Source: Squalus acanthias (taxonomy: Eukaryota). From it: DNA of 64,000 nucleotides. Below are positions 24,216-58,459 of the stretch, in pieces (within the stretch, counting starts at the first letter, position 1; every line of letters starts with the position of its first letter). Made by a program: the position numbers and the translations under genes. The notes beneath the pieces were generated by a model. The model had not been told where the DNA came from. It ran no database searches and worked only from the letters and a program-made list of their open reading frames with translations. The stretch is from assembly GCA_030390025.1 (NCBI GenBank), contig CM059449.1, positions 13,516,001 to 13,580,000 on the forward strand. Reading direction: 5' to 3'.

Positions 24216-24266
24216 ATTCATTATTCCTTGCTAACTAGACTTCAGCAGCTAAGTTAGCTTCTTACT

Positions 24267-24965: not shown

Positions 24966-24972
24966 ATTTATT

Positions 24973-25480
24973 GGGCCGTATTTTCCGATCGGAGGCTTCC
25001 CGCGTGCAGAGGCCTCTGATCTGGAAAAAATCTACGCACTTAGCTGAGGGCTCCCGAGGTCCGGACACTTCTGCTCCTGGGCCTCTCCAAACTCCAAGTG
25101 CGCAGGGCCCACGTATCCCAGAGGCGCATGCGGTTCGCAAGCGTCCCTGGGATCACTTGGGCCATGGAGAGCCAATCAAAGAAGGGAGTTTTCCTTCATA
25201 CACTTGACAGATAAACCTGCCAAATATCCGAATGGAGATCACCCCAAAAACACTTTAAATAAATTTTAAAAAAAAGAATTTTTAAAATTAGTTGAAATTA
25301 CAATAAATTAAATATTTTAAACAAAAATTTAATTTTTTGAAAAAAAATAATTAAAGTTTTTTACGGGGCTAAAAATAAACTTACCTTTTTTAAAGTATTT
25401 TTAAATGATAAATGAGTGAAATTTGTTTTTTTAACTTTTTTCAAATCTTATGCTGGTAAAAGCAAGTCTTACGCCTGCTA
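24973..25480 (-). mobile_element. Harbinger-type MITE, truncated
   Basis: Starts ATT-GGGCCGTATTTTCCGATC and is highly similar to 23480-23980; the second TIR is missing. Confidence 0.8.
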
Positions 25481-25564
25481 TTATGTTTTAAATATATTTG
25501 GTGCAGCGTTGCCACCTACTGGTACAGTAGCATATAACATGCAAGGATCAAATGACATCTCAGA

Positions 25565-29395: not shown

Positions 29396-29646
29396 GTATT
29401 GACATAAGAAAGCTAACAGAATAACTCAATTGGAAATAATGCTCAATATCACCTAATTGACAAATTATGATGTCTAACTTGTCCCTTCCCTATTTCTTAT
29501 CGCTACGAGTAACACTTGTGTCTAAGAATACTTTTTATGCATGACACCAACTCTTACTCCTGACACGGTGATATCTCAGTGACAGAAAGTTGAGGTTTAT
29601 GCCGGTGACTACTGATGGAGCCCTCGAATAATGAGGTGGCACTCAC

Positions 29647-29690
29647 TTCAATGATGAAAATGCAGTTGCAGCACTTGCTTCTCGTCTCAT
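29647..29690 (-). pseudogene. Putative decayed leader exon of the minus-strand paralogue
   Basis: gacATG AGA..., 44 nt, then a perfect GTGAGT donor. Nearly the same size (44 vs 43 nt) and the same MR start as the intact leader, but the hydrophobic core is degraded. Confidence 0.3.
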
Positions 29691-32540: not shown

Positions 32541-35500
32541 AGGAGCGGCTACAGAACATTTTGGAGGGGGAGGGCGAACAGCCAGCTGTCGTGGTGCACA
32601 TAGGCACCAACGATATAGGTAAAAAAGGGGATGAGGTCCTAAAAGCAGAATATAGGGAGTTAGGAGGTAAATTAAAAAATAGGACCTCAAAGGTAGTAAT
32701 CTCAGGATTGCTACCAGTGCCACGTGCTAGTCAGAGTAGAAATAGGAGGATATTTCAAATGAATACGTGGCTAGAGGAATGGTGCAAGGGGGAGGGATTC
32801 AAATTCCTGGGACATTGGAACCGGTTCTGGGGGAGGTGGGACCAGTACAAACCGGACGGTCTGCACCTGGGCAGGGCCGGGACCGCTGTCCTAGGGGGAG
32901 TGTTTGCTAGTGCTGTTGGGGAGGATTTAAACTAATGTGGCAGGGGGTTGGGAACCTGAGCAGGGAGACAGAGGAAAGCATGTCAGGAAGGGACAGAAGG
33001 TATGGAGTAAAAGGTAAAGTGTTAAATAAGGAAAAAGCAGGAAGTAAGTGTCGCAAAACACATTTGAAAGTTCTTTATCTGAATGCACGTAGCATTCGTA
33101 ACAAAATTGACGAGTTAACGGCACAAATAACTATGTATGGGTATGATCTTGTGGCCATTACAGAAACATGGCTGCAGGGTGACAACGTCTGGGAATTAAA
33201 TATGCCAGGGTATTTAACAATCAGGAAGGACAGGCAGGAAGGAAGGGGAGGGGGGTGGCTATGTTAATAAAGGAAGGAATCACTGCAATACAGAGAAATG
33301 ATATTGGGTCAAAAGATCAGGATAATGAAACAGTTTGGGTAGAGATTAGGAATAATAAGGGGAAAAAAACACTGGTGGGCGAAGTATATAGGCCTCCTAA
33401 TAGTTGCAACTCTGTTAGAAGAAGTATTAATCAGGAAATAGTTGGGGCATGTAATAAGGGAACAGCTATAATTATGGGGGATTTTAACTATCATATTAAC
33501 TGGACAAATCAAATTGGGCAGGGCAGCCTTGAGGAAGAGTTTATTGAGTGTCTTAGGGATGGATTTCTTGAGCAGTATGTAACTGATCCTACAAGTGGGC
33601 AAGCAACCTTGGACCTGGTACTGTGTAATGAGTCTGGATTAATTAATAATGTCCTAGTTAAGGATCCCCTTGGAATGAGTGACCATAACATGGTTGAATT
33701 CCATATCCAATTAGAGGGTGAGAAGGTTGGTTCTCAAACAAGCATACTGAGCTTGAATAAAGGAGACTATGATGGCATGAGAGCAGAATTGATTAAAGTG
33801 GACTGGGAAAATAGATTAAAGGGTAAGACGGTACATGAGCAGTGGTGTTCATTCAAGGAGTTATTTTACAACTTTCAAAATAAATATATTCCACTGAGGA
33901 AAAAAGGGTGTAAAAGAAATGACAGCCATCCATGGCTAAGTAAAGAAATTAAAGAAAGTATCCAACTAAAAACAAGGACATATAAGGTAGCCAAAGTTAG
34001 TGGGAGGATAGAAGATTGGGAAGTCTTCAAAAGACAGCAAAAAGTAACTAAAGGATTGATTAAGAAAGGGAAAATAGACTATGAAAATAAATTAGCAAAA
34101 AATATAAAAACAGATAGCAAGAGTTTCTATAGTTATATAAAAAGAAAAAGGGTGGTTAAGGCAAACGTAGGTCCCTTAGAGGATGAGACCGGGAAATTAA
34201 TGGTGGGAAACATGGAGATGGCAAAAATGCTGAACAAATATTTTGTTTCAGTCTTTACGGTAGAGGACACTAAGAATATCCCAACACTGGACAAACAGGG
34301 GGCTCTAGTGGGGGAGGAGCTAAATACGATTAAAATTACTAAGGAATTGGTACTCAGTAAAATAATGGGACTCAAGCGGATAAATCCCCTGGACCTGATG
34401 GCTTACATCCTAGGGTCTTGAGGGAAGTGGCAGTAGGAATTGTGGATGCTTTGGTAATAATTTTCCAAAACTCCCTGAACTCAGCAAAGGTCCCGGCAGA
34501 TTGGAAAACTGCTAATGTAACACCCTTATTTAAAAAGGGTTGTAGGCAGAAGGCTGGAAATTATAGACCAGTTAGCCTAACATCTGTGGTGGGTAAAATT
34601 TTGGAGTCTATTATTAAGGAGACAGTAACGGAACATTTAGATAAACATAATTTAATAGGACAAAGTCAGCATGGCTTTATGAAGGGGAAGTCATGTCTGA
34701 CAAATTTGCTCGAGTTCTTTGAGGACATAACGTACAGGGTGGATAAAGGGGAACCAGTGGATGTAGTGTATTTAGACTTCCAGAAGGCATTCGACAAGGT
34801 GCCACATAAAAGATTATTACTCAAGATAAAAAATCACTGGATTGGGGTAATATTCTGGCATGGGTGGAGGATTGGTTATCTAACAGGAAGCAGAGAGTTG
34901 GGATAAATGGTTCATTCTCGGACTGGCAACCAGTAGCCAGTGGTGTTCCGCAGGGGTCGGTGCTGGGTCCCCAACTCTTTACAATCTATATTAACGATTT
35001 GGAGGAGGGGGACCGAGTGTAACATATCAAAGTTTGCAGATGATACAAAGATGGGAGGGAAAGTAGAGAGTGAGGAGGACATAAAAAACCTACAAGGGGA
35101 TATAGACAGGCTGGGTGAGTGGGCAGAGATTTGGCAGATGCAATACAATATTGGAAAATGTGAGGTTATGCACTTTGGCAGGAAAAATCAGAGAGCAAGT
35201 TATTATCTTAATGGCGAGAAACTGGAAAGTACTGCAGTACAAAGGGATCTGGGGGTCTTGGTGCAAGAAAATCAAAAAGTTAGTATGCAGGTGCAGCAGG
35301 TGATCAAGAAAGCCAATGGAATGTTGGCTTTTATTGCTAGGGGGATAGAATATAAAAACAGGGAGGTATTGCTGCAGTTGTATAGGGTATTGGTGAGACC
35401 GCACCTGGAGTACTGCATACAGTTTTGGTGTCCATACTTAAGAAAATACATACTTGCTCTCGAGGCAGTACAAAGAAGGTTCACTCGGTTAATTCCGGGG

Positions 35501-38035: not shown

Positions 38036-40387
38036 TCATAGAATCATAGAAGATAGGAGCAGGAGTAGGCCATTCGGCCCCTCGAGCCTGCTCCGCCATT
38101 CAATGCGATCATGGCTGATCATCCAAATTCAGTACCCTGTCCCTGCTTTCTCCCCATATCCCTTGATCCCTTTAGCCTTAAGAAATATATCCAACTCCTT
38201 CTTGAATCTATTTAATGAATTGGCCTCTACTGCCTTCTGTGGCAGAGAATTCCACAGGTTCACCACTCTCTGGGTGAAGAAATTCCTCCTCATTTCTGTC
38301 CTAAATGGCTTACCCCTTCCCTTAGACTGTGACCCCTGGTTCTGGACTCTCCGACCATCGGGAACATCCTTCCTGCATCTAGTTTGTCCTGTCCTGTCAG
38401 AATTTTATAAGTTTCAATGAGATCCCCTCTCATTCTTCTAAACTCCAGCGAGTATAAGCCCAATCGACCCAATCTCTCTTCATACGTCATTCCTGCCATC
38501 CCAGATATCAGCCTTGTGAATCTTCGCTGAACTCCTTCCATGGCAAGAACATCCTTCCTCAGTTAAGGCGACCAAAACTGCACACAGTACTCAAGGTGTG
38601 GTCTCACCAAGGCCCTCTACAACTGCAGCAAGACATCCTTGTTCCTGTACTCAAACCCTCTCGCTATGAAGGCCAACATACCATTTCCCTTCTTAACCAC
38701 CTGCTGCACCTGCATGCTTACCTTCAGCGACAAGGACACCCAGGTCTCATTGCACTTCCCCTTCTCCCAATCTATTGCCATTCAGATAATAATCTGCCGT
38801 TCTGTTTTTGACACCAAAGTGGATAACCTCGCATTTTTCCACGTTATATTGCTTCTGCCATGCTTCTGCCAAATCACCCAACCTGTCCAAATCATCCTGG
38901 GGTTTCTTGGCATCCTCCTCGCAGCACACACGCCCACCCAGTTTTGTGTCGTCTGCAAACTTGGAGATATTACATCTAGTTCCCTTGTCTAGATCATTAA
39001 CATATATTGTGAATAGCTGGGGTCCAAGGACCGATCCCTGTGGTACCCCACTAGTCACTGCCTGCCACTCGGAAAAAGACCCGTTTATTCCAAGTCTTTG
39101 CTTTCTGTCTGCCAACCAGTTCTCTATCCAAGTCAATACCTTGCCCCCAATCCCATGTGACTTAACTTTACACGCTAATCTCTTATGCGGGACCTTATCA
39201 AAAGCCTTTTGGAAGTCCAAATACACCACATCCACTGGTTCTCCCTTATCTATTTTACCAGTTACATCCTCAAAAAATTCCAGTAGATTAGTCAAGCATG
39301 ATTTACCTTTTGTAAATCCATGTTGACTTTGTCCGAACCTGTCACTGTTTTCCAAGTGCTCTGCTATTCCATCTTTTATAATGGACTCTAGCATTTTCCC
39401 CACTACCGATGTCAGGCTTACCGGTCTGTACTGCCCCGTTTTCTCTCCCACCCTTTTTGAATAGTGGGGTAACATTAGCTACCCTCCAATCCATGGGTAC
39501 TGTTCCAGATTCCATCGACTGTTGGAAGATGATCAGCAATGCATCTACTATTTCGAGGGCCACTTCCTTAAGTGCCCTAGGATATAGATTATCAGACCCT
39601 GGGGATTTATCAGCCTTCAATCCCTTCAATTTCCCTAACACCATTTCCCTACAAATTCTGATTTCTTTCAGTTCCTCCCTTTCATCAGACCCTATGTTCC
39701 CCAACATCTCTGGGAGGTTATTTGTGTCCTCCTTTGTGAAGACAGAACCAAAATATGTATTTAATTAGTCTGATATTTCTTTGTTCCCCATTATAAGTTC
39801 CCCTGATTCTGACTGCAAGGGACTTATGCTTGATTTCACTAATCTTTTTCTCTTCACATAGCTATAAAAGCTTTTACAGTCAGTTTTTATGTTCCCTGCA
39901 AGCTTACTCTCATATTCTATTTTCCCCTTCTTAATTAATCCCTTTGTCCTCCTTTGTTGAATCTTAAACTGCTCCCAATCCTCAGGGTTAATGATTTTTC
40001 TGGCCAATTTATATGCCCTCTCCTTGGATCTTATGCTATCCCTAATTTCCCTTGTTATCCTCGGTTGAGTCACCCTTTTTGTTTTATTCTTATACCAAAC
40101 TGGGATGAACAAATTCTGTATTTCGTCCATGCGGTCTTTCAATGTTTGCCATTGCCTATCCACCATCAACCCTTTGAGTGACATTCCCCAATCAATCCTA
40201 CCCAACTCGCACCTCATACCTTCGTAGTTTCCTTTATTTAAATTTAGGACCCTAGTCTCTGAGTCAACTGCTTCACTTTCCATCCTAATGAAGGGGCCTC
40301 ACACAACAAGATTGCTAATTAATCCTTTCTCATTGCATAATACCCAGTCTAAGATGGCCTGATCTCTGGTTGGTTCCTCGACATATT
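38036..40387 (-). mobile_element. CR1 fragment
   Basis: Minus-strand ORFs 38290-40283 with RT motifs. Confidence 0.9.
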
Positions 40388-41963: not shown

Positions 41964-42006
41964 ATGCGATGGGATGGGGTCGTTTGGTCTTTGCTGTTGT
42001 TCTCTG
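41964..42006 (+). CDS. NCR3/NKp30-like receptor exon 1 (signal peptide)
   Basis: acaATG (A at -3) encodes MRWDGVVWSLLLFS+G, then the donor GTGAGT. Phase 1 matches the V exon acceptor. Confidence 0.8.
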
Positions 42007-42039
42007 GTGAGTAAATAATCGACACCCAGGGTCTCTTTT

Positions 42040-42930
42040 GTACATATAGTACACAGATATTTATACACATATAGATACACATATATTTACATACGCATAC
42101 AGGTATACATATATATGCAGGTACACATATATATACACATACACACATATATATATCATATACATGCACATACATTTAAAAAAAAAATTCGTTCATGGGA
42201 TGTGGGTGTCATTGGCAAGTCCAGCATTTATTGCCCATCCCTAATTGCCCTTGAGAAGGTGGTAAGCCTGCCTTCTTGAGCCGCTGCAGTCCGCGTGGTG
42301 AAGGTGCTCCCAAAGTGCTGTTAGGGAGGGAGTTCCAGGATTTTGACCCAGCGACGATGAAGGAACGGCGATATACTTCCAAGTCAGGATGGTGTGTGAC
42401 TTGGAGGGGCACTTGGAGGTGGTGGTGTTCCCATGCGCCTGCTGCCCTTCTCCTTCTAGGTGGTAGAGTTCACGGATTTGGGAGGTGCTGCCGAAGAAGC
42501 CTTGGCGAGTTGCTGCAGTGCATCTTGTAGATGGTACACACTGCAGCCACTGTACACCGGTGGTCGAGGGAGTGAATGTTTAAGGTGGTGGATGGGGTGC
42601 CAATCAAGCGGGCTGCTTTGTCCTGGATGGTGTCGAGCTTCTTGAGTGTTGTTGGAGCTGCACTCATCCAGGCAAGTGGAGAGTAATCCATCACACTCCT
42701 GACTTGTGCCTTGTAGATGGTGGAAAGGGCTTTGGGGAGTCAGGAGGTGAGACACTCGCAGCAGAATACCTAGCCTCTGACCTGCTCTTGTTGCCACAGT
42801 ATTTATGTGGCTGGTCCAGTTAAGTTTCTGATCAATGGTGACAATGTTATACATACTTATGCAGGTACACATACATGTACACACACACACACATTTATAT
42901 ATACACATACAAATATTTAATTATATACTG
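42040..42930. repeat. (TA/CA)n microsatellite-like tract split by a LINE fragment in intron 1
   Basis: Alternating purine-pyrimidine runs at 42040-42175 and 42848-42930. Confidence 0.75.
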
Positions 42931-45299
42931 TGGAACACATCCCGTTGACATCAACTGCCTATACAATGGAATCGTAATTTTCCGAGAAACTGTTGTTAAC
43001 TGTGATGTTGTTAATGGTCGAAAGATCGGCGGCAGCGCATTCAAAAGTTTCCAATAAGCCCCCGCTGCGCGCGGTACCCCATTGTGCCTTAGGATTAGAC
43101 AAGAGTCAAGAGCGATTTGCCACAGAAAAGGAGACCGACGACTGACGCGGTCAGGCTAGTTCAGAAGCGACAAGAGTGGAGTGAATTCATCGCGCGCCCC
43201 AGCGTCGCTGCGGAGCTGACGGATGGGTATTTAGTAAAATATATAATTATTTTAAAAAACTGCACCTGACTCCATGTGGCGAAGGATCTCACGCCGACGA
43301 TCACCCCCTTTTCATAATTTCCGCTGGGTATTTCCAGGATTGTCTATTGTCATGTCAGTTTCACAGGATGGGCTGTTTCACCTTGTTTGGTGCCCACTTA
43401 TCAGTTCGCCGTGCACTCATCAAACCGTGCCAAGTGTACCAAGTTATTGACGCCACTCCCTGTTGAGTAATGCATAAAAACAAATATGCAGTTGTAGAAA
43501 GTGGGGCATAAACCGTTGACATCAACTCCCTAAAGCCGCGCTACCAGTGTAAAGGTTATTGGATGAAAAATCGGGGGTAGCGCACGGGAATTTTCCGATG
43601 CGCCCCCGTCTGCTCCACTGTGGCTCTGGGCCACAGAAACTCAATCCGACAACTCTGATACTGTCACTCTGAATGGGTGCAGTGGTCTCGTTAGTCCTCG
43701 TTAGTAATCGGATTCAAGTCCTAAAGGAACAGACTTTAAGTGACTAGACATAACTGATCTTATTCTCTCCTGGCCGGCCTCCGATCCTCTACAGTCTTCA
43801 GCTCATCCCAAACTCTGCTGCCCGTATCCTATCCAGCATCAAGCTCCCCTCACCTGATAACTCCCGAGCTCGCTGACTCACATTGTCTCCCGGTCACACA
43901 ATGCCTGAGCTCTAAAATTCTCATTCTGGTGTTTAAATCCCTTCACGGTCTCACTTCTCCCTGTCCCTGTAACTTCCTTCAGCCTTACAGCTATCCAAGA
44001 AATGTTCTTCCCTCCAACTCTGGACGCTGTACTTCCGCCACTCCGCCTCACCATTGGTGGCCGTGCCTTCAGCCGTCTTGGCCTCATGCTCTGGAATTCC
44101 TCTCCTAAAACTCGATGCCTTTCCACCTCCCCTCTCCTCCTGTAAGACCCTCCCTAAAAGCCCACCCCCTTGAGCATGCTTTTAGCACCCCCTTCTAACA
44201 TCTCCTTCTTTAGCTCCAGTCCAATTTTGTTCGATTATGCGGCGTCTTGGGGGTCTGCTTGACATTAAAGGCACCATATTTGTGCCGATTATTTTTATTG
44301 CTATTGTTGAAATGTAGAAAAGAGCTACTAGTATCAATAGACGGCGTTGTTCGCCAAACTTAGGGGGAAAACGTACTCTTCATCTCTGAAAGAAGGGGAC
44401 TGGGAGAGATTAAAAGCAGCACTGATTCTAGTTAAGGTATGACTGTCGGGCAATTAATATACAAAGACAAACTGGCAAAGGGCATGCTCTGATGTCAGGA
44501 ACCTGGACTGGCTTTCAAGATGTAGGAGAGTACAAACTCTCCAGTCATTCAAGAGATGCTGTGATGGGCTGGGTTATAAACGATGAGGTCGACGGATTCA
44601 ATAACCATTTTCACCTATATATTTATTTGGAGGTTTATGGTAACTACTATGTTACAGAAGCAAAAGGGAAAATTACAGAACAAATGTGATTTCGTTCCCT
44701 GCCATACAGCAATGTCGTAGCTACATCCACAAGGCACAATTCAGGAGTGTGATGGAATACTCTCCACTTGCCTGGATGAGTGCAGCTCCAACAACACTCA
44801 AGAAGCTCGACACCATCCAGGACAAAGCAGCCCGCTTGATTGGCACCCCATCCACCACCTTAAACATTCACTCCCTCCATCACCGTCGTACCATGGCTGC
44901 AGTGTGCACCAGCTACAAGATGCACTGCAGCAACTCGCCAAGGCTTGTTCGACAGCACCTCCCAAACCTGCGACCTCTACCACCTAGAAGGACAAGGGCA
45001 GCAGGCGTATGGGAACAGCACCACCCCCAAGTTCCCCTTCAAGTCACACACCATCCTGACTTGGAAATATATTGGCCGTTCCTTCATCGTCCCTGGGTCA
45101 AAATCCTGGAATTCCCTCCCGAACAGCACTGTGGGAGTACCTTCTCCACGGTTCAAGAAGGCGGCTCACCACCACCTTCTCAAGGGCAACTATGGATGGG
45201 CAATAAATGCTGGCCTTGCCAGCGACGCCCACATCCCAGGAACGAATAATAAAAAAATATCTTATTCTCACTCTCCCGTGCATCAGATTGTGGCTCGAG

Positions 45300-45429
45300 C
45301 GAAATAACAACAGAAAACGCTGGAAAAACTCAGCAAGCCAGGCAGCATCCGTGGAGAGAGAAACAGAGTTTTTCCAGCGTTTTCTGTTGTTATTTCGGAT
45401 TTCCAGCATCCGCAGTATTTTGCTATCGT
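45300..45429. mobile_element. Inverted Penelope pLTR fragments
   Basis: 32-bp perfect inverted arms 45300-45331 and 45366-45397; flanking duplication ATTGTGGCT(C/A)GAGCGA. Confidence 0.8.
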
Positions 45430-46411
45430 ATTGTGGCTAGAGCGAGTTGGGATCACGATTCACATACAAACTGCGTAAATATGGGCAATTTTAAGTATTG
45501 AATAGTAAAATGCTTAGCTGCATTCTGTTTCCCTATTTGCGAGTTTGCTGACATTCCAGCCTGTCCCTATATATAAAAAAAAGTTTGTTTAAACAATAGT
45601 TTGCGGCAAAGACTTAACACATCAGGGTACATTTTCAACTCGCTACCCGGAGCGTAAAACTGGAGTTGGGTTAGGCCGTCCTTTATAGAAACCGCCCGTT
45701 TTCCATCGCTTCTGAAATCGATGGATTTTTAACTTTGCACCACTTTTACGGCCTTCTTAAGTTGAAAACCTAACCCACTGAACTAGTACGATAGCAAAAT
45801 AGTGCGGATGCTGGAAATCCGAAATAACAACAGAAAACGCTGGAAAAACTCAGCAGGCCAGGCAGCATCCGTGGACTAGTGTTTGGGATCCAAGTGTAAT
45901 ATTCATGGTTCTGGGGTAGTTCAGGCAACAAGGTGGAATCGGTGAATATTTTAAAGAAACTGCTTTGACTAATTGTTTTACAACAAATACCGCTACCGCT
46001 ATTAAAGACACGCTCACTATTTATTTCCATAAATGAAGGACAGGCGCATCGGCGCTGTCCATTTTATTGGTGGATCTGACTGAGGGGCAGAAAGCAAACG
46101 CTCCTATAGACTGGAAATCTGAATTAGAAGTAGAAAATGCTGGATACACTCAGTAGGTCAGGCAATGCCGGTGGACAAGCGAAAAAGGGTAAAGTTAGTG
46201 TTTCAGCTCTGTGACCCTTCCTCTGAATACTGAAGCTTTAAACCAACCTTTATTCGTTACTTCGCAGACGCTTCCCGAACTGCTGAGGTTTTGGACCGCT
46301 GTCAGTTCTGACTCAGGGCAGAACGGATTTTTTTTGGCGTAATTTGTTGCTAACGAAAGCGTAAATAAGGTAGAGTGAGGTGACTATTAATGAGGTTATT
46401 TACAATTACAG

Positions 46412-46765
46412 GAGTTACTGTCTCCAGTGTTACAGTCAGACAAACGCCGTCTTCCGTTAGCGTTACCGAAGGTGGCACGTTGCATCTGTACTGCGATTTC
46501 ACTTTGGATACGAACCATTCAGAAACCAGGGTGGTTGGTGCCCTGACCTGGTACAAAGACACGAGAAGGTGTCAGGTCTGTAACAACTGCTCAGAATATA
46601 TCGGTCGCGTTATGCAGTCCGGCTCATCTTCATTTCGAGATTTTCAAAACGCATCTCTGGCAATCACGGAGGTGAAACCGAACGATACGGGAAGGTATTA
46701 CTGCAGCGTGTATCTTACCGTCGGTGGACAGGGCAGCGGCCAAGGGACAGAAGTCAGAGTAAACA
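46412..46765 (+). CDS. NCR3/NKp30-like receptor exon 2, single VJ-type Ig V domain
   Basis: Acceptor ttacag and donor GTAAGT; 354 nt, phase 1-1. Motifs VRQTP..V.EGG.L.L.C, GALTWYK, EYIGRV, ASLAITEVKPNDTGRYYC and GQGSGQGTEVRV match the NKp30 pattern (GSVTWFR, EFRGRL, D..IYVC, GVGTGNGTRLVV). Confidence 0.93.
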
Positions 46766-48312
46766 GTAAGTTTGCATTGTCTTCCATCTACCTTTCGATT
46801 CAGCTTTCTCCAAAACCAAGATATTGAAATGGTAACTCAGGTTAATGAAATCATTAATACATTCATGGAAATTTCCCCTGTCGGGTCTTTCCCTCAAGAT
46901 AGGTTAAATGAGGGGAGCGGGTGCAACGCTGGTATTACAACCCGACTTGATTTTACGCCCCATTAGAGTCAATGAAGTGCAATATTGGGTGGAGTGTAAA
47001 ACCGGCGTTCCACCCGATCCTGTGGGTTTCCCGCCCGGCCTCAGGTTAAAATTAACCAGGATAAGGGGTCAGACATTTCAGACGGAGATGAGGAGAAATT
47101 TCTTCACTCAGAGGGTGGTGAATCATTGGAATTCTCTACCCCAGAGGGCTGTGCATGCCCAGCTGTTGAGTATTTCAAGGCTGAGATCGAGAGATTTTTG
47201 GACTATGGGAATCAAGGGATGTGGGGAACGGACGGGAAAGTGGAGATGCGGTGGAAGATCAGCCATGATCTTATTGAATGGCGGGGCAGCCTCGAAGGGC
47301 CGAATGGCCGACTCCTGCTCCTATTTCTTATGTTCTGATGTGATTATAGTCAACATTCTGGGGGTTAATGATAACCTAACTCTCCGGGCTGGAATCCAGG
47401 GACCGGGTGGAATGGTAATGTTTGCACAGCTGCCCAATATTCCACTCCATTGACTTTATTGAAGAGTAAACTCGGGCTGGGTGTAAAGCCAGCACTCCCT
47501 CCGTTTCAGAGGTGGGGCTTAGGTTAAATTTTCTCCCTATGTATCTGTCTTTCAATTCAGTTGCGTCCAATGCAAATGTTTAAATGGACTACTAGCGGAA
47601 AAAGTCTGTAGGTAGCCAAACCGTAAATGCACTTCTGAAAGATTCCCCTGTTGGCTACTTATAGTAAAATGATCAACACATTGAATCGAAATAAGAATCA
47701 AATGTAAATCATCGGCATTGGAGCGAAAATAATTCTTAATCCCTTGTCGCGACTGAAATAGCTTTAGAATAAGAAATGTGCGTAGGATTTGCCTTATTAA
47801 TAATATTTATAGTCACATTCCCAAATTTACAGCTATCCCATAATTTATATCGGGTCCCTTTGGGGTCAACCTGGCTCCAAAATAATATGCCGAGTGATTG
47901 AAGGTCATAACTAAGTTAATCCTCTGTGACAGACTTGTAATCCACAACTTGAACCAGTCAGGTCAGCACTCCACAAGTGCACGATTGACAATTGATCAAT
48001 CAGTGATGTTCATTAATAAAAATTGGAGGGGGAGACATGTCACCAGGGATGAATATTTTCGCACACTTGGAGACAACTGAGACGAGTCAGAGGGATTCAA
48101 CAAACAAACCAACAGATATGCTGTTTTATTTAACGGCAGGCACATTGTAGAATCGTTATTTGTTGAGTAGTTAAGCGAAATTTTGCACACTAATTTCGAA
48201 CTGATGGTCAACCGATAATTATACTTTCAGCATTTGGAATTTTACCCTGACTGATGCTCGATAAATATATTTCAATGAACTCTCAGCGAAGCCACGAAGA
48301 CTGTAACAATTT

Positions 48313-51300
48313 CTCTAGAAAAGAGAAGCCTGAGGGGCGACCTGATAGAGGTCTTTAAGATTACGAGAGAGTTTGATAGGTTAGATGTAGAGAATATGTT
48401 GCCACTTGTGGGGGACACTAAAACTAGGGGCCACAAATATAAGATAATCACTAATAAATCCAATAAGGAATTCAGGAGAAACTTCTTTACCCAGAGAGTG
48501 GTTAGAATGTGGAACTCGTGGAGTGGTTGAGGCGAGTAACATAGATGCATTTAAGGGGAGTTAGAAGCGTACATGAGGGAGAAAGGAATAGAAGGATATG
48601 CAGATAGCATTAGATGAGGTACAGTTGGTGGAGGCTCGTGTTGGCCTGGACCAGTTGGGCTGAATGACCTGTTTCTGTGCTGTAAATACTGTGTAATTAC
48701 AATTTTCAGTCTTCATTGAAAATTTCTCTCATGTGAAAACTGTAGTTGCCAAACCCTCCTGTAGCGCACGACCCATGCAACTATTTGTCACCAGAATGAA
48801 ATTGATGGAAAAGACAAATCTTTCTAAAATTGCATCACCTACTTCTCTCAAGACGCAATACACGTTTCAACTAAACTCTGAAGTTTATAGAACCATAGAA
48901 GTTCACAGCACAGAAGGAGGCCATTCGGCCCATCGTGTCTGTGTCGGCCGAAAAAGAGCTAACCAGCCTAATCCCGCTTTCCAGCTCTTGGTCCATAGCC
49001 TTGTAGGTTACGGCACTTCAAGTGCATATCCAAGTGCTTTTTAAATGTGGTGAGTGTCTCTGCCTCTACCATCCTTTCAGGCAGTGAGTTCCAGACACCC
49101 CCACCACACTCTGGATGAAAGTTCTCCTCAACTCCCCTCTAACCCTTTTACCAATCACTTTAAATCTATGCCCCCTGGTTATTGACCTCTCTGCTAAGGG
49201 AAATAGAAGAATCATATCCACTCTATCTAGCCCCCTCCTAATTTTATATACCTTTAGCCTAGTCTTGTTTCCCTTCTCAGTTCCCTTCCCTGCTGCAGTT
49301 GTACAGGGCCTTGGTGAGACCACACCTTGAGTATTGTGTGCAGTTTTGGTCGCCTTATCTGAGGAAGGATGTTCTTGCCATGGAGGGAGTTTAGCGAAGA
49401 TTCACAAGGCTGATACCTGGGATGGCAGGAATGATATATGAGGAGAGATTGGGTCGATTGGGCTTATACTCGCTGGAGTATAGAAGAATGAGAGGGGCTC
49501 TCATCGAAACATATAAAATTCTGACAGGTCTGGAGAAACTAGATGCAGGAAGAATGTTCCCGATGGTCGGAGAGTCCAGAACCAGGGGTCATAATCAAAG
49601 GATAACGGGTAAGCCATTTAGGACAGAAATGAGGAAGAATTTCTTCACCCAGAGAGTGATAAACCTATGGAATTCTTTACCACAGAAGGTAGTTGAGGCC
49701 AAGTCATTAAATATATTCAAGAATAAGTTAGATATATTTCTTAAAGCTAAAGGGATCAAGGGATATGGGGAGAAGGCAGGTACAGGGTACTGAGTTTGGA
49801 TGATCAGCCATGATCTCATCGAATGGCGGAGCAGGCTCGAGGGGCCGAATGGCCTACTCCTGCTCCTATCTTCTATGTTTCTATGTTTCCTCTACGATAT
49901 AGAACTTTTTCAAACATAGGCTGCATTTCAGACATTTGAATAAACAATGATGATTTTCAACTCAGACATTTGTATCCAGTTTGTATCCCAGAAATTTCTG
50001 GGTGACCTTCATTTTCCATCTTGTTTCTTGACCAGTTTAAGATAGCTTCCGATATCTTTTGCAACGGGAAAGATCCAGAGCGAAAAAACAAAGGGTAAAC
50101 CAACAATACAGTTGCAAAGTTTGGAGAGAAGATGCAATCCCGCATGTCCATATATCAGACTGTAGAACAGTAACGGCTCCGAGATTATAACTTGAAAATC
50201 AGAACCTAATGCCAAACACTTTGCTGAACTTTAACTGTCAATAACTATACACTACATATCATGAAAAGAAAATTGTTCATTTAATGTTCCGCCTAATGAA
50301 GTAATCAACTAAAATAAACCAATTTTACCCACTACAGTTTACAACCAGTTCATGGAACATTGCTGAAATCATTTGGATAGACAATGGAGTTATTGCAAGT
50401 TGCACATTACCAACTGCTACAACATTATGATGGAATGAGTGATAAGTGTACAATGTCTATTTCACAGAAATCATAGAATCATAGAATGGTTACAACATGG
50501 AAGAAGGCCATTCGGCCCTTCGACGCCGTGCCGACTGTCAGCTAGTCCCACTCCCCCGCCCTTTCCCCGTAGCCCTGCAATTTGTCTTCCTTCAGATACT
50601 TAGCCAGCTCCCTTTTGAAAGATAAAATTGAGTCTGCCTCCACCACCATTTCAGGCAGTGCATTCCAGATCTTAACCACTCGCTGAATAAAAAAGTTTTT
50701 TCTTACGTCGCCTTTGGTTCTTTTGCCAATCACCTTAAATAGGAACAGTTTTTCTCTATCTACCCTGTCCAGACCCCTCATGATTTTGAACACCTCTATC
50801 AAATCTCCTCTCAACCTTCTCTACTCTAAGGACAACAACCCCAGCTTCTCCAATCTATCAACATAACTGAAGTCCCACATTCCTGGAATCATTCTCCTAA
50901 ATCTTTTCTGCACCCTCTCTAAGACCTTCACATCCTTCCTAAAGTGTGGTGCCCAGAATTTGACACAGTACTCCAGTTGGGGCCAAACCAGTGTTTTATA
51001 CAGGTTCATCAGAATTTCCACACTTTTGCACTCTATACCTCTATTCATGAAGCCCAGGATCCCGTAAGCCCTTTTTAACTGCTTTCTCATCCTGCCCTGC
51101 AACCTTCAACGATTTATGCACACATACCCCCTGGTCTCTATGTTCATGCACCCCCTTTAGGATTTTACCATTTAGTTTATATGTCCTCTCCTCATTCCTT
51201 CTACCAAAATGCACCTCTTCACACTTTTCTGCTTTAAATTTTATCTGCCACATGTCTGCCCATTTCACCAGCCTGTCTGTCTTCTGAAGTCTATCACTCT

Positions 51301-52248
51301 CCTCCTCACTGTTCACTATTCTTCCAAGTTTTGTGTCATCTGCAAATTTTGAAGTTGTGCCCTGTACACCTTAGGTGAGTGACAACGCCCTGGGTACAGC
51401 ACAGCACAGCACCGCACCTAGCTGCTGAGCTGATACAAGCCACAAAAAAGTAATGGTAAATACAAGCTTTTATTTCAAAAGTCTGTCGATTTCAGGGGGA
51501 AGGCTGAGGAGGGGTAATGTCTCCGTCTTATAAAAAATCATATCAAAAGTGGCAGAAAATTTACATTTGAGTTTATGATCCCTCCTTCATTATTGCGTTG
51601 CCATGTGGCTGCAGTTGGCAATACTGCTTACTGCGCACACTGCATTCTAAAAATATAAATTAGTCTGGCCCGAAAGGAAAGGAGGATTCTTGGTTTGTGA
51701 GGGTTCATCAGGACCTTTGCTATTCTGCGGGTCTGACAGCAGGATCGTGTCTGGACAGAACAGGTAAACACAGTATTGAAACAGACATACTTCTGCCATG
51801 GAAACTGGACTTGAAACCTCCGCGCACCACCCCACCCCCCCACCCCCCACCCCCATTATATTCTTATATTTGGAAAATTAATTGTTTACTGCTGGGTGTG
51901 TAGTCATAAGAACATAAGGAATAGGTGCAGGAATAAGCCACTTGGCCCCTCGAGCCTGCTCTGCCATTCAATAAGATCATGGCTGATCTTGGGCTCAAAG
52001 CTACTTCCCTGCCCGCTACCCATAACCCTTCACTCCCTTATCTTGTAAAAATCTGTCTATCTCCACCAGAAATGTATTTAATGACCCAGCCTCCACGGCT
52101 CTCTGGGGCAGAGAATTCCACAGATTTACGACCCTCTGAGAGAAGAAGTTCCTCCGCATCTCAGTTCTAAAAGGGCAACCCTTTATTCTGAGACTGTGCC
52201 CCCGAGTTCTAGCTTTCCCCACGAGGGGAAACATCCTCTCTGCATCTA
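48313..52248. mobile_element. Intron 2 CR1 fragments (48313-48695 +, 48886-49255 -, 49290-49890 +, 50465-51366 -, 51905-52248 -)
   Basis: CR1 ORF2 C-terminal motifs and tails. Confidence 0.82.
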
Positions 52249-52776
52249 GTGAACAGTCAGGACTCCGTTGTGCCGCATCACACTAATAAACAATTCATTT
52301 GCGTGGCGAGCTTCTTTTCTACAAATAGGCTGCACCACACGAGAGAGAGATCGAGATCTGCACAGAACATTGTAGAATTGTTCACACCTCCCCCCCCCCC
52401 CCCGCCCCCATCCCCCTCAGCCTTTCCCCTGAAATCGACAGGCTTTTGAAATAAAAGCTTGTATTCCACTACTTTTCTGCGGCTTGTATCTGCTCAGCAT
52501 CTAGGTGCTGTGCTGTGCCGAGGGCGTTGCCACACACCCAAGGTGTCTCAACTGAAACATACTGCCGACAATAGCAAGCAACAAAAACACAAAGAAAGGT
52601 GGAAAGAAAAATATATATTTTTTTGCTTGATGTGGTCGTCATCGTAGCGCTGTGCTGTACCGAGGGCGTTGCCACCCACCTACGGTTTCTCAGATAAACC
52701 CATACGGCCAACAATAGCAACCAACAAACATACAAAGAGGGTGGAAAGAAAAACGCGTTTTATTCTCTCTCTGCAG

Positions 52777-52914
52777 TTCGCGATGAATCTGAAGTGACAT
52801 CGGTTCCGTTTCAAGGGAACATATATCTGCTCATTTTTGCAGTGCTGACAGTTGTGTTCTTCGTGCTGACTCTTGTTAAAATAATTTCTACCCTGCACTG
52901 CTGCGGACCTCCAG
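52777..52914 (+). CDS. NCR3-like receptor exon 3 (stalk + transmembrane)
   Basis: Polypyrimidine tract with ctgcag acceptor and CAG|GTAATT donor; 138 nt, phase 1-1. Encodes IRDESEVTSVPFQGNIYLLIFAVLTVVFFVLTLVKIISTLHCCGPP. Confidence 0.88.
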
Positions 52915-52939
52915 GTAATTATCCTGAATTCAGCTTCAT

Positions 52940-55260
52940 TCCTAACTCGCACCAAGTCCCGTTCGCCCTTCACCCCTGTGCTCGCTGACCTACATTGGCT
53001 CCCGGTTAAGCAGCGCCTCGATTTCAAAATTCTCATCCTTGTTTTCAAATCCCTCCATGGCCTCGCCGCTCCCTATCTCTGTAATCTCCTTCAGCCCCAC
53101 AACCCCCCCAGATATCTGCGCTCCTCTAATTCTGCCCTCTTGAGCATCCCCGATTATAACCGCTCAACCATTGGTGGCCGTGCCTTCTGTTGCCAGGGGC
53201 CCTAAACTCTGGAATTTCCTGCCAAAACCTCTCCGCCAATCTCTGCTCCTTTAAGACACTCTTTAAAACCTACCTCTTTGACCAAGCTTTTGGTTACCTG
53301 CCCTAATTTCTCCTTATGTGGCTCAGTGTCAATTTTTTTTGTCTTATAATACTCCTTTGCTGCGCCTTGGGACGTTTTACTATGTTAAAGGCGCTATATA
53401 AATACATTTTATGGTTGTTGTTGTTGTTGTTCATTGATACGTGGAATGAGTGACTACAAACCCATCTCTTTCCATCAAAATATGAATGAGGAGATTCACG
53501 AGAATGTTGCCTGGTCTGGGGAATTTTAGCCATGAGGAAGGACTGGATAGGCTGGGGTTGTTTTCTTTGGAACAGAAGAGGCTGAGGGGAGAGCTAATTG
53601 AGGTGTATATAATTATGAGGGGCCTAGATAGAGTGGATAGGAAGGACCTGTTTCCCTTAGCAGAGAGGACAATAACCAGGGGGCATAGATTTAAAGTAAT
53701 TGGTCGAAGGTAAAGGGGATTTGAGGAGAATCTTTTTCACCCAGAGGGTGGTGGGGGCTGGAACTCACTGCCTGAAAGGGTGGGAGAGGCAGAAACTCTC
53801 TCCACATTCAAAAAGGACTTGGAGATGTACTTGAGGTGCTGTAACCTACAAGGCTACGGACCAAGTGCTGGAAAGTGGGATTAGGCTGGATAGCTCTTTG
53901 TCGGCCGGCGCGGACAAGGAGGGCAGAATGGCCTCCTTCTGTGCTGTAAATTTCTATGATCCTCTGATTCTATGACTATATCTGGAAACGAGTAACACCC
54001 ATGATGCATAGCTTAGATTGCAATATATCGACAACTGCACTACAAGAATCAAAATGATTGACAATTGGAATAATGTCTACGTTTTCTCTGATCAATTTTA
54101 TTGATCAAGAGAAACTCAATGAGGTGATCGCACGACGTTTGGAAAATCATTGCATAATTTTGCACAGTTTGGAACCATGGTTTTTTGACAAAATATTGAC
54201 ACACCCTGTTTTAATTAGCCTAGAAGCAATTAATGGAAAGACGGAATATGTATTAGATGTAACAGCACTTCAGTGTATTCACCACGAAAGACTGTCTCCG
54301 AGGAGGCTCCAGGGAATGAGCGAGGCCGAGATCAACTCAGCCCCATGCCCTTATTTTATTAATTGGAGGCCCATCATGTTGGCAGGTCGCCACAGCACAG
54401 TCGTAGGGTGCGTGGCTTTGGCAGTAAAGGAACGTATTGGGGGAAGCTAAGGGAGCGTGGCGGCCGTCTATCTGCCTCACCTGGCCAAGCAAGAAGCACG
54501 AATAAAAAAAACCAACTTGTATTTATAGAGCGCCTTTAACAAAGTAAAACGTCCCAAGGCGCTTCACAGGAGCGATTATCAGACAACATTTGACACCGAG
54601 CCACAAAAGGAGAAATTAGGGCTTGTGGCCAAAAGCTTGGTTAAAGAGGTAGGTGTTAAGGAGCTTCTTAAAGGAGGAAAGGGAGGCGGAGAGGTTTAGG
54701 GAAGGGGAGGGGAAAAGAGAAAGAAACAGGAGTGGGAAATTACAATGTAACAAACCGCGTATCAGAACGACAAGAATGAAAAAAACACCACTGCTGCATT
54801 TACATAGGATTACATCGGATATAGGGCACCGAAACAGGCCATTGAGCCCAACCAGTCCATGCAGGCGTTTATGCTGCACTCGAGCCTCCTCCCGTCTTTC
54901 CTCATCTAACTCTATCAGCATAACCCTCTATTCCCCTCTCCCCTTAAATGCATCTATACTATTTGCCTCAACCACTCCCTGTGGTAGCGAGTTCCACATT
55001 CTCAACACTCTTTGGGTAAAGAAGTTTCTTCTGAATTCCCTATTGGATTTCTTGGTGACTATCTTATATTGAGGGCCTCTAGTTATGCTCTTCCCCACAA
55101 GTGGAAACATTCTCTCTGTATCCACTCTATCAAAACCTTTCATAATTTTAAAGACCTCTATTAGGTCACCCCTCGGACCTCTTTTTTCAAGAGAAAAGAG
55201 ACCCAGCCTGTTCATCCTTTCCTGATATGTATACCCTCGCATTTCTGGTACCATCCTTGT
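52940..55260. mobile_element. Intron 3 LINE fragments (L2 52940-53432 +, CR1 53487-53975 +, L2 54510-54710 -, CR1 54800-55260 -)
   Basis: Match the L2 and CR1 3' ends elsewhere in the window. Confidence 0.8.
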
Positions 55261-55655
55261 AATTATTTATGCATCACTTTCAATGTAATGTTCTAATACA
55301 TAAAATTATGAGGCGGTCGTCCAAATTGTAGACAATTGAAAACTTATCTAAATGTTAAACTCTGAAGACCTCAGAAGGTCCCATGACTTCACAGTCTCTT
55401 TAAATGTTTTGCTCCATAAGCCTTTTTGCTGTTTTATAGATGCAGTGTTATAATGTTTTTGTCACAGTGTAAGATATTAAACAAAGGTAAAGCAAGGATA
55501 ATATAATTTTGGAAAATAAACTTTTATGTTAATGAAGAAATACATTTCCTTCTTAAAGTTTTCACAGTGTACTGACAGTAATAGCATACTAATTTTTGGA
55601 CTGTTATGTTTTGTTCCGTTTTGAAAATATCTAATCCATTTAAAACGTTTTAAAG

Positions 55656-55687
55656 ATAAAAGAACGGGGAGCCAAGGTGCAAACAAG
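55656..55687 (+). CDS. NCR3-like receptor exon 4 (short cytoplasmic exon)
   Basis: ttttaaag acceptor and AAG|GTATGT donor. The 32-nt length converts phase 1 to phase 0 as required. Encodes DKRTGSQGANK. Confidence 0.72.
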
Positions 55688-55751
55688 GTATGTAGCATTT
55701 TTTAATGAAGACATTCAATTCGATTTGCTCAATGATTAATTGTCATTGTAG

Positions 55752-55820
55752 GTGACTATTTTTGAGGAGCTGGATGAAGAGCTAAGATTCACTTTACAGG
55801 AGACCACCATGGTGCAACCG
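55752..55820 (+). CDS. NCR3-like receptor exon 5 (cytoplasmic)
   Basis: ttgtag acceptor after a 64-nt intron; encodes VTIFEELDEELRFTLQETTMVQP. CCG|GTTGGA is the best phase-0 donor, but the exact 3' end is uncertain. Confidence 0.62.
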
Positions 55821-56292
55821 GTTGGAATAGAGGACAAAATAAATAGTGTAAACTCACCCTTTTATAGCGGTTTCAATTTTACTGGCGCAAGCCAAGGCAG
55901 AAAATCTATCGCGAACACGTGTTATTCAGTCTGGTTATATTCTACTGCGTATCAAGTTTCCGAAATACTTTTTTTTAGCACGTCAGGGAACAGTAAAGAG
56001 TGTAATCGTCACTAGATGTTATTATACACTTAAAATAGATACTCTCAAAAACAGTCAGGGGTTTAAGTAGCATTGCTTCGGGTGGATTGCTCTGTAGTGT
56101 TAGGGGTTTTGAATTATAAGATGCTCAGTTCTGTAAGAGGAAAAAAAATACATTGGCCCGAAACTGCTCGCAGTATGTCAGTAAAATTGCATATAAATGG
56201 ACCGCCTGTAGCCTTTTGAATAATTATGCACCCAGATGTATCAGTTATCGTGTAATCTCAGCTCTTGTAACAAATGATCTGATTAATTTAAG

Positions 56293-56577
56293 GAAGGACA
56301 CGCGCCGGAAAATATTATTTACGCTACCCTGAATATCCCGGGATCAAACAGCCTTAAGCCTCCGGATCGGATTGCCTGCGAGTCGGTGAGGTCGCGCCTA
56401 CAGAATAAAAACCCAATCGCGCGCGGGTCGCTATCGCCTCAAGAAAGTACAGAAGAATCGGTTGTGTACACGTCATTGTGGCATCCGGCTTACAGTGAGA
56501 ACTCGATTCTGCCCGAGCCTGTGCAGACTCCTAGAAGGAAGGCCGAGCAGGTCGTGTACGCGGCTGTGAGGGTGTAG
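56293..56577 (+). CDS. NCR3-like receptor terminal coding exon with three ITIMs
   Basis: aatttaag acceptor, phase 0. Reads EGHAPEN-IIYATL-...-VVYTSL-...-VVYAAV-RV-stop (TAG 56575-56577); in frame with the supplied ORF 56386..56577. Confidence 0.88.
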   Translation, partial: EGHAPENIIYATLNIPGSNSLKPPDRIACESVRSRLQNKNPIARGSLSPQESTEESVVYTSLWHPAYSENSILPEPVQTPRRKAEQVVYAAVRV

Positions 56578-56796: not shown

Positions 56797-56802
56797 AATA
56801 AA
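56797..56802 (+). promoter_or_regulatory. Candidate polyadenylation signal of the NCR3-like gene
   Basis: AATAAA about 220 nt after the stop codon, in an AT-rich 3' UTR. Confidence 0.5.
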
Positions 56803-58459
56803 TATTATTAAATCCATGTTATTTCAATGTGTGCGAAAAAGGAGATTTTGTAACAGCAGTTTGATGGCTTCAGTCCCGCTTTATTGGCACTCCATCCACC
56901 ACCTTAAACATTCACTCCCTCCACCACCGGCGCACCGTGGCTGCAGTGTGTACCATCGACAAGATTCATTGCAGCAACTCGCCAAGGCTTCTTCGGCAGC
57001 ACCTCCCAAACCCGCGACCTCTTCCACCTAGAAGGACAAGGGCAGCAGGTGCCTGGGAACACCAGCACCTGCAAGGTCCCCTCCAAGTCACACACCATCC
57101 TGACTTGGAAATATATCACCGTTCCTTCATCGTCGCTGGGTCAAAACACTGGAACTCCCTTCGTGACAGCGCTGTGGGAGCACCTTCACCACACGGACTG
57201 CAGCGGTTCAAGAAGGCGGCTCACCACCACTTTGTCAAGGGCAACTAGGGATGGGCAATAAATGCCGGCCTTGCCAGCGACGCCCACATCCCAGGAACGA
57301 ATAAAAAAATATTCCAGGTCACAGTGCTCTGGGGTTTGATGCTGTTCCCTTGCCCTTATTGTCGGAATGAAATCAGTTCTGTTTTGTTCTATTTGTGCTT
57401 CTCTATTATCATTCCTCAAATCGCATGTAATCTCTCGAAGAGCAAGTATATTAACCAAGGTTTGAAATGAAGTCTGAAACCTACAATTTCTAATGTGTCC
57501 ACTGGACAGTCCTGCAGTTGTAGACACGATGGATTGGAAGATGCTGTTAGGTATAACCGTGCCCCACTTTGGTTTGTCATTCCTCTGTCCACTATTTTAA
57601 CGAGATGTGCTTCCATTTAAAATAAAGACCCTGAATTGAGTTTCCCAAGTCGGAGGGGTCAGCTGTAATCTTAACCGTCCGCAGGGAAACTGACGCGATC
57701 GGGTCCAAGGCTGGGTTTAGAGTCCGCCTGATTTTACTCCCCATTGAATTCAATCGCGAGTAATATTGGGCGGGGTGTAAAGCCGGCATTCAACCCGATC
57801 CTGTGGGTTTCCCCCCAGCGAGTTACATTAAAATTGCCCCCATTTTCTTTCCAGTAACTCTTTTGTCACAAGTTGTTCTCTCACAACGTTTATCTGCGCA
57901 TGAAGGGAGTAGACACCCGTTTGGGGTGAAATTCCTATTTTATTTCTCGATGTGTGGGTAATAATATCACAATGCATGCAAAGTTGTGCGCTCAGTGATA
58001 TTTTAAGCTGTCCTCGTTAATTCATAAGGCGCCCTGCAATTTTTATGCATCAGACCCTATTAATATAATTATTTAGTTGTGAAAAACTATTACAGATGAG
58101 TAACAATTTGATTATTTTACCACGTTTATGTCTTTTCCTCCAGGCAGTGATTGATATAGTTCAATGGGCGTCGGCAAGTCGCTGTAATCTCACCTAACTG
58201 ATCATTAGGGAATGAGCGCATGCACCCTCTTCTATTGTGGGCTGGCTGCCAATCGAGTCCTATCCTGTCCTTGGCCGCCTTCCACACTCACAGGAACTTC
58301 AAAAATGTGTGTCTCAGGAGCAAGAACCACGGCTGGTATCCTCTATTTAGACTGCTGAGATTAACTAGAACGAACACAGCCCCCGTTCTACTAAAGCGAG
58401 TTAACTCAGCACAGAGGAGCGATACAATCCACGGTGCCTTCTGGTGCTTATAGCTCATT

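Follow-up and report, generated by a model that had tools for sequence, protein, structure and literature searches.

An NKp30-like receptor gene with three ITIM-type tail motifs in a repeat-rich region of the Squalus acanthias genome

Exon structure of a V-domain receptor gene

We analysed a 64-kb stretch of the Squalus acanthias genome (NCBI assembly GCA_030390025.1, contig CM059449.1, forward-strand positions 13,516,001 to 13,580,000), referred to here in its entirety as the window, whose 64,000 nucleotides contain no N. On its + strand, between positions 41964 and 56577, lies a real and apparently intact gene, the five exons of which would encode a 283-amino acid type I membrane receptor comprising a leader, one immunoglobulin variable (V) domain resembling that of NKp30 (NCR3), a neutral transmembrane (TM) segment and a long cytoplasmic tail with three immunoreceptor tyrosine-based inhibitory motifs (ITIMs). 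A preliminary description of this DNA had proposed six exons of 43, 354, 138, 32, 69 and 285 nt and a protein of 306 amino acids. All six lengths can be placed on the + strand with AG and GT borders and compatible phases; exons 1, 2, 3, 4 and 6 are borne out by their splice sites and by colinearity with a horn-shark protein, while the fifth piece is doubtful and the product is likely to be the shorter one.

The exons are laid out as follows. Exon 1 (41964-42006) supplies the start codon and the leader MRWDGVVWSLLLFS and ends in phase 1 at a GTGAGT donor. Exon 2 (46412-46765, donor GTAAGT) holds a complete VJ-type IgV domain, in which the landmark residues Cys27, Cys97 and Trp46 are followed by a J-like strand, SGQGTEVRV, at 46735-46764. 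Exon 3 (52777-52914, donor GTAATT) encodes a short stalk, the TM segment IYLLIFAVLTVVFFVLTLV (52821-52877), a hydrophobic stretch of 19 residues with no charged residue in its core, and then KIISTLHCCGPP. Exon 4 (55656-55687, donor GTATGT) is a 32-nt micro-exon that is entered in phase 1, left in phase 0 and reads DKRTGSQGANK, and the last coding exon, exon 6 (56293-56577), encodes a 94-amino acid cytoplasmic tail and ends in a TAG stop codon. The first AATAAA 3' of the stop, 220 nt downstream at 56797-56802 on the same strand, is a candidate polyadenylation signal by motif match only. In the six-exon model the introns measure 4405, 6011, 2741, 64 and 472 nt. The preliminary description gave outer coordinates only, and the positions of exon 4 and of the doubtful exon 5 are our own placement; between exons 3 and 6 there are nine open AG..GT candidates of 32 nt and three of 69 nt.

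Support for this model comes from a close relative. When 1.84 billion representative proteins were scanned by HMMER with the V exon as query, there were 268 matches at E ≤1e-3 and seven at E ≤1e-30; the best single-V match was P0003, a 280-amino acid protein of the horn shark Heterodontus francisci that NCBI names "natural cytotoxicity triggering receptor 3-like". Searching exon by exon, we found P0003 to be colinear with exons 1, 2, 3, 4 and 6, which align by blastp to its residues 1-14, 16-132, 135-177, 180-185 and 190-280 with E values of 3e-4, 4e-48, 1e-16, 0.46 and 9e-28 and identities of 71% (10/14), 62%, 74% (over 43 amino acids), 83% (six residues) and 56%, respectively. In the opposite direction, tblastn of P0003 against the window recovered the three long exons (2, 3 and 6) at E values of 1.8e-42, 5.7e-14 and 7.5e-25. 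As a sequence match, the five-exon correspondence is far above chance. The two proteins have the same five-part layout, a neutral TM segment, a CCGP motif and a C-terminus ending in VYAAVRV. Exon 4, with its six aligned residues, is too short to reach significance alone; among the nine candidates of its length it is the only one that resembles the micro-exon peptides found at the same position in homologues (DKRTGTQVVSK, DKRSGSQVVSR, DKGSATQVVPK and DKELRTQAVNK). A homologue search with P0003 as query returned P0003 alone, and one with the V exon returned nothing in the length range.

Exon 5 (55752-55820, + strand) is a different matter. This 69-nt stretch, which would encode VTIFEELDEELRFTLQETTMVQP, is open, in phase 0 and flanked by AG and GT, and small cytoplasmic inserts do exist in relatives (12 amino acids in P0005, 26 in P0179), so that the 306-amino acid model, with the stretch spliced in constitutively or as an alternative cassette, has something in its favor. 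We nevertheless consider that model unlikely. The encoded peptide resembles neither of those inserts nor any other part of a homologue, the best blastp match among the fetched homologues being seven residues in a protein of 3505 amino acids (E 0.38), and in seven homologues (P0003, P0021, P0037, P0048, P0176, P0177 and P0178) the micro-exon is joined straight to the tail. Moreover, the donor, GTTGGA, fits the GTRAGT consensus at only three of six positions and the preceding intron is only 64 nt long. Because both borders are in phase 0, skipping the stretch keeps the frame, and the missing counterpart, the poor donor and the very short intron together make 283 amino acids a likelier product than 306. 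Judged by its sequence, the stretch is probably no exon, or at most an alternative cassette.

Throughout the gene, the splice junctions are placed by consensus splice sites and protein colinearity. Weighing against the gene model is the outcome of a search of sequencing runs with the V exon, which listed no run; no junction and no expression is thus confirmed by transcripts.

The V domain and its nearest solved structures

The preliminary description had recognized a VJ-type IgV domain, and the closer analysis agrees with it. Exon 2 matches the Pfam V-set family at an E value of 2.2e-12 (47.6 bits against a cut-off of 26) and carries the V region and the J-like strand together, starting where the leader ends and reaching SGQGTEVRVN without an interruption of the recombination-signal type, which makes it a domain of the non-rearranging VJ type. 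The J consensus is given as FGxGTx(L/V)xV in a section of a published account (PMC11599192), and the window gene has S where this consensus has F. In an alignment of 58 sequences, the glycines G109 and G111 show little or no variation, and every V residue that is invariant across the alignment is kept in the window gene.

We compared the domain to solved structures by sequence, by profile and by predicted fold. When the V exon was searched against PDB sequences, the top four matches were four distinct NKp30 sequences, at E values of 4.1e-9 to 5.2e-9 and about 40 bits, followed by a two-V antibody construct (1.4e-7) and SIRP-alpha (1.2e-5, 28.8 bits). A profile made of the window V domain and eight elasmobranch relatives (profile A1) likewise found NKp30 as the best single-domain chain in the PDB, at 61.7 bits, with SIRP at 47.1 bits. 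The V exon was also modelled with AlphaFold2 from the 58-sequence alignment (A2). The model reached a mean pLDDT (the predictor's per-residue confidence score) of 89.1 and was compared by Foldseek to 350,542 PDB chains, of which the top four were again NKp30 (E values of 2.6e-12 to 6.9e-11, template-modelling scores of 0.79-0.83), with SIRP-alpha next at 2.1e-9. Aligning the 999 best Foldseek chains with VIA-align gave Z scores of 17.0, 16.7 and 16.5 for NKp30, with sialoadhesin next at 13.9; SIRP reached 13.3. The best of these alignments (Z 17.0) has a root-mean-square deviation of 2.6 over 113 residues, and identity to NKp30 in the fold comparisons is about 28-32%. By sequence and by predicted fold, human NKp30 is the closest solved match.

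Several of these results temper that ranking. With profile A1 the margin is small, as single V domains of antibodies, T-cell receptors (TCR), IgNAR and SIRP score 47-57 bits, and two-V diabodies outscore NKp30 in total. The fold ranking, for its part, is not fully independent because NCR3 sequences were part of the alignment and NKp30 structures were among those the predictor had seen.

Two other families were considered at this level. No chain of CD28, CTLA-4 or PD-1 appears among the 60 best sequence matches or the 50 fold matches listed, where the only relation of the CD28 family is a ligand, PD-L1, at Z 13.6. With none of its members among the best sequence or fold matches listed, membership of the CD28/CTLA-4/PD-1 family was rejected. 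SIRP proteins consist of a V domain and two C1 domains, while the window gene has a single V domain, a profile search of the window showed no further immunoglobulin ORF (open reading frame) and SIRP falls below NKp30 by sequence and by fold, so that on architecture and scores the gene does not look like a SIRP.

Tail motifs, signalling and paired relatives

The likeness to mammalian NKp30 extends to having one exon for a single V domain of the VJ type and to the topology of a type I membrane protein. It does not extend to signalling. According to passages of PMC6514059, mammalian NKp30 is a purely activating receptor that couples through an arginine in its TM segment to CD3-zeta or FcR-gamma and has no signalling motif of its own, in agreement with what the preliminary description had said of it. 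The window gene instead combines a neutral TM segment with a 94-amino acid tail bearing three ITIMs, at about 28-32% identity to the mammalian protein, and the signalling definition of mammalian NKp30, a charged TM segment with a short tail devoid of motifs, therefore does not describe it.

The three motifs lie in exon 6 on the + strand: IIYATL at 56314-56331 (tail residues 8-13, Tyr10), VVYTSL at 56461-56478 (residues 57-62, Tyr59) and VVYAAV at 56551-56568 (residues 87-92, Tyr89). The leader, the VJ-type IgV domain, the TM segment and these motifs are all there, as the preliminary description had said. Each of the three fits [SIVL]xYxx[ILV]; the first and second tyrosines are 49 residues apart and the second and third 30. 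A spacing of some 26-31 residues between ITIMs is typical of binding by tandem-SH2 (Src homology 2) phosphatases. A fourth tail tyrosine occurs in the sequence PAYSEN. Compared with Pfam, the tail (56293-56574) also gives a sub-threshold likeness to SIT, an SHP2-interacting adaptor, which is not significant (E 0.025, 15.5 bits against a cut-off of 27.6).

The tail was aligned with those of eight shark and ray relatives. Counting the window gene, the first and second tyrosines are each kept in seven of the nine tails and the last in all nine, and the last motif takes the form Q[VIFT]VYA[AT]V in seven of them. Among the exceptions, P0037 has histidine at the first tyrosine and P0048 lacks the segment that bears the second. 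P0003 differs more deeply from the window gene: histidine and serine replace its first two tyrosines, and the one motif left to it, TVYAAV, is of the immunoreceptor tyrosine-based switch motif (ITSM) type. With only one of the three tyrosines left in this closest relative, constraint on the motif set is not universal, a point that counts against the inhibitory reading, and signalling design differs even among near relatives.

The preliminary description had concluded that the receptor is inhibitory. Three ITIM-type motifs, a neutral TM segment and conserved tyrosines speak for this conclusion, and with a TM segment that lacks a charged residue the protein should not pair with adaptors carrying immunoreceptor tyrosine-based activation motifs (ITAMs); as to signalling itself, the claim goes as far as these motifs do. 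We infer that the receptor is inhibitory by design. In this model, which we consider the most likely mechanism, a bound ligand would place the tail within reach of Src-family kinases; once phosphorylated, the ITIMs would recruit phosphatases of the SHP-1/SHP-2 type, and this recruitment would damp the activation of the lymphocyte that bears the receptor. For this receptor, its expression and cell type, its ligand and the steps from phosphorylation to phosphatase recruitment are elements that we infer. It is also conceivable that the tail is not purely inhibitory and that at least one of its tyrosines serves other SH2 proteins as a docking site or works as a switch, such that the receptor could modulate or even activate. 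The ITSM-type pattern of the orthologous last motif in P0003, the additional tyrosine in PAYSEN and the 49 residues between the first two ITIM tyrosines would suit such a function. We regard it as improbable, given that all three motifs match the ITIM pattern, that the last two tyrosines stand 30 residues apart and so within the range typical of tandem-SH2 phosphatases, and that the TM segment is neutral.

The closest relatives of the window gene are all elasmobranch and come from Heterodontus, Chiloscyllium, Hemitrygon, Pristiophorus, Rhinoraja, Hypanus, Narcine, Carcharodon and Mobula. All 34 proteins for which a name was looked up had one, and these close relatives are labelled NCR3-like, polymeric immunoglobulin receptor (pIgR)-like or uncharacterized, the NCR3-like label being carried in Heterodontus, Hemitrygon, Mobula, Pristis and Carcharodon. 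Remoter matches include two nurse-shark NCR3 proteins, QTT61898 (P0050) and QTT61904 (P0033), and the NCR3 of Xenopus, Leptobrachium, the leatherback turtle and the brushtail possum. When profile A1 was searched against a collection of 5.8 billion clusters, all 16 matches were elasmobranch, the best was 62% identical and one of them, P0178, is labelled "TIGIT-like". The product of the window gene itself was not found in the protein collections searched, in which the best identity is 62%.

Among these relatives, ITIM-tailed proteins occur in Chiloscyllium plagiosum (P0005), Hemitrygon akajei (P0021), Hypanus sabinus (P0176), Mobula (P0177 and P0178) and Narcine (P0048). They share with the window gene a single V domain, a neutral TM segment, a micro-exon of the form DK..Q..K, tyrosines at the same three aligned positions and a last motif, Q[VI]VYAAV, that is nearly identical to its own. 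They differ from it in V-domain identity, which is only 35-53%, in a first motif that frequently closes with M and, in some cases, in having inserts or a second V domain. The same V lineage contains a second class of proteins, encoded by genes of their own in other species, that have a lysine in the TM segment and a short tail (P0014, P0025, P0033, P0035, P0181, P0183 and P0184). In Mobula hypostoma, the ITIM-bearing P0178 and the lysine-bearing P0183 differ at six of 128 leader and V residues and then diverge completely, and Mobula birostris P0177 and P0181 likewise place a near-identical leader and V domain on an ITIM tail and on a lysine TM segment with a short tail, respectively. Because their V exons differ, P0178 and P0183 look like paired genes and not, as NCBI has them, isoforms of one "TIGIT-like" gene. 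At the level of sequence, such combinations of a near-identical V domain with an ITIM tail or a lysine-bearing TM segment are the hallmark of receptors that work in inhibitory and activating pairs. The window gene would then form the inhibitory arm of a paired-receptor multigene family, the activating members of which have a similar V domain, a lysine in the TM segment and a short tail. This view is supported by the conserved tail tyrosines and by the approximately 95%-identical Mobula V domains found on opposite signalling modules, and it should be useful for annotation and for the choice of genes for ligand and signalling assays.

Family placement and genomic surroundings

Passages of two studies (PMC12227049, PMC10751288) describe NCR3 as linked to the major histocompatibility complex (MHC) in sharks, linkage being a defining trait, and, in discussing how antigen receptors arose, treat NKp30 as an MHC-encoded VJ gene that does not rearrange. 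Nurse-shark NCR3 (GenBank MT914154-914161) supplies the elasmobranch point of comparison: these are NKp30-like single-V receptors, and two of them, QTT61898 and QTT61904, match the window V domain at E values of 9.4e-11 and 1.7e-13. QTT61904 has a lysine TM segment and a short tail and QTT61898 has no ITIM. A shark NCR3 multigene family was reportedly set out by Kinlein et al. in 2021 (Immunogenetics 73:333), the abstract of which is said to describe eight divergent subtypes and linkage to the MHC.

We placed the V domain among its relatives with trees made from the HMMER matches, one of 173 rows by FastTree and one of 66 rows and 117 columns by IQ-TREE (LG+C20), after dropping proteins longer than 620 amino acids and domains covering fewer than 85 query positions. 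The 66 rows were chosen by hand from named or representative proteins, three domains per protein at most, the trees contain no immunoglobulin, TCR, CD28 or NITR outgroups, and nurse-shark NCR3 is represented by two of its eight subtypes. In both trees the window V domain groups with horn-shark P0003 and bamboo-shark P0005, and this trio adjoins a clade of rays supported at 96/94. On the other side stand multi-V proteins; these include a group from Bos, Naja and Anolis that is the SIRP family, its Bos member P0049 having two or more V domains and matching SIRP-beta1 at an E value of 7e-55, and the multi-V Chiloscyllium protein P0029, whose closest likeness is to antibody V domains.

The preliminary description had assigned the gene to the NCR3 family, and it is here that the result is divided. 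NKp30 is the best solved match, as described above, but the 66-row tree leaves the window gene outside a clade of 35 rows (97/88), in which all tetrapod NCR3, the two nurse-shark NCR3 proteins and a shark group formed by P0027 and P0044 fall together. The branch that joins the window lineage to NCR3, as opposed to the SIRP and immunoglobulin-like multi-V proteins, reaches only 79/69. Approximately unbiased (AU) tests, both of them framed after inspection of the tree, rejected neither a clade of the window trio with SIRP (log-likelihood difference 6.1, p 0.31) nor one with tetrapod NCR3 (10.4, p 0.14); the exclusion from the 97/88 clade, the low support of the joining branch and the tolerance for SIRP all weigh against a firm assignment to NCR3. 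The phylogenetic check proposed in the preliminary description thus yields a robust grouping neither with NCR3 nor with SIRP, and because 117 columns are too few, the V-domain tree leaves family membership undecided. How broadly the family name is used also matters. In the 173-row tree, QTT61898 and QTT61904 fall on opposite sides of the deepest split, and since published nurse-shark NCR3 straddles this split, the NCR3 family as used in print is at least that broad. One of the other six published nurse-shark subtypes may be the orthologue of the window gene.

An alternative reading of these data is that the V domain comes from another VJ-type family, either SIRP-like or an elasmobranch lineage of its own, and that its likeness to NKp30 reflects shared VJ ancestry. 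This would account for the exclusion of the window gene from the NCR3-containing clade, for the failure of the AU test to reject a SIRP clade that includes a bona fide SIRP in P0049, and for the varied names that NCBI gives to clade members (pIgR-like, TIGIT-like, uncharacterized). The SIRP family also offers a likeness in kind, with a VJ-type V domain and paired ITIM-bearing and activating members. We hold this reading to be possible though doubtful. NKp30 scores above SIRP in all four comparisons (40 against 28.8 bits by sequence, 61.7 against 47.1 bits by profile, 2.6e-12 against 2.1e-9 by Foldseek and Z 17.0 against 13.3), the window gene has one V domain and no C1 domains, nurse-shark proteins deposited as NCR3 lie on both sides of the deepest split, and a clade with tetrapod NCR3 is likewise not rejected by the AU test. 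Of similarly tentative standing is the more far-reaching idea that, together with its relatives in horn shark, bamboo shark and rays, the window gene forms an ancient, elasmobranch-wide lineage of paired receptors that stands beside rather than inside NCR3 proper and has kept its inhibitory tail with three tyrosines since sharks and rays split. Were this true, NKp30-type receptors would have begun as an inhibitory and activating pair of which tetrapods retained the activating arm only.

Whichever name applies, the sequences identify the window gene as one more member of a gene family that is already annotated in sharks and rays. The novelty of this member, for which the preliminary description had called for a check, does not hold at the level of architecture: the combination of V domain, 11-amino acid micro-exon and three-tyrosine tail is already present in NCBI annotations of Chiloscyllium, Hemitrygon, Hypanus, Mobula, Narcine and Heterodontus, that is, in at least six elasmobranch genera. 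We found no published description of an ITIM-tailed shark NKp30, a weak negative given that the key shark NCR3 paper and its supplements lay outside the search. Since ITIM-tailed relatives are publicly annotated and a multigene family of shark NCR3 has been published, the gene overturns nothing; it adds to an elasmobranch cluster an inhibitory-type, NKp30-like gene that the protein collections searched do not contain.

The surroundings of the gene are dominated by repeats. As the preliminary description had observed, the gene is spread through repetitive DNA: its introns are full of interspersed repeats, with three direct families and nine inverted pairs of at least 80 nt between 41500 and 57500. 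A second V exon was sought in the 64-kb window with tblastn, using the fetched proteins of up to 620 amino acids, and none was found; in a six-frame translation of the window, a V profile hidden Markov model (HMM) scored the gene's own V domain at 126 bits and the next match at only 7.1. The interval 18725-29690 contains no V domain by the same kind of profile and gave only weak tblastn scraps, the best of them on the + strand (E 0.016). Pfam searches found nothing in ten intronic ORFs, and in ten large ORFs elsewhere in the window only reverse transcriptase and endonuclease domains of long interspersed nuclear elements (LINEs). No other recognizable host gene was found in the window, the large ORFs of which are such LINE fragments.

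A locus of this kind invites the suggestion that what we see is a copy already silent or in decay, part of a receptor cluster with fast turnover and intact merely by chance. Transcript support is absent, the search of sequencing runs with the V exon having listed none, the product is missing from the protein collections searched, where 62% is the best identity, and transposon fragments riddle the locus. We think this distinctly unlikely, as the five exons supported by homology are all open and bounded by canonical splice sites, every V residue that is invariant in the 58-sequence alignment is kept and the conserved tail tyrosines are retained. A functional gene is the reading that we prefer.

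Four LINE fragments with RVT_1 and endonuclease-reverse-transcriptase domains were located, at 7976-8749 (- strand, E 7.6e-20), 21342-22205 (+ strand, E 9.7e-27), 33255-34421 (+ strand, E 3.8e-11) and 38747-39475 (- strand, E 2.1e-30), and the strong GC-skew blocks of the window roughly overlap them. One interspersed repeat is present in three copies that are 90-95% alike, of which two (42270-42719 and 44724-45254) lie in inverted orientation inside intron 1 and the third (56875-57309) just 3' of the candidate polyadenylation signal. Lastly, positions 1148-1336 on the + strand match residues 10-69 of P0093 by tblastn (E 1.5e-9, 44% identity), outside any V domain, and this is probably transposon-derived sequence caught in the P0093 gene model.

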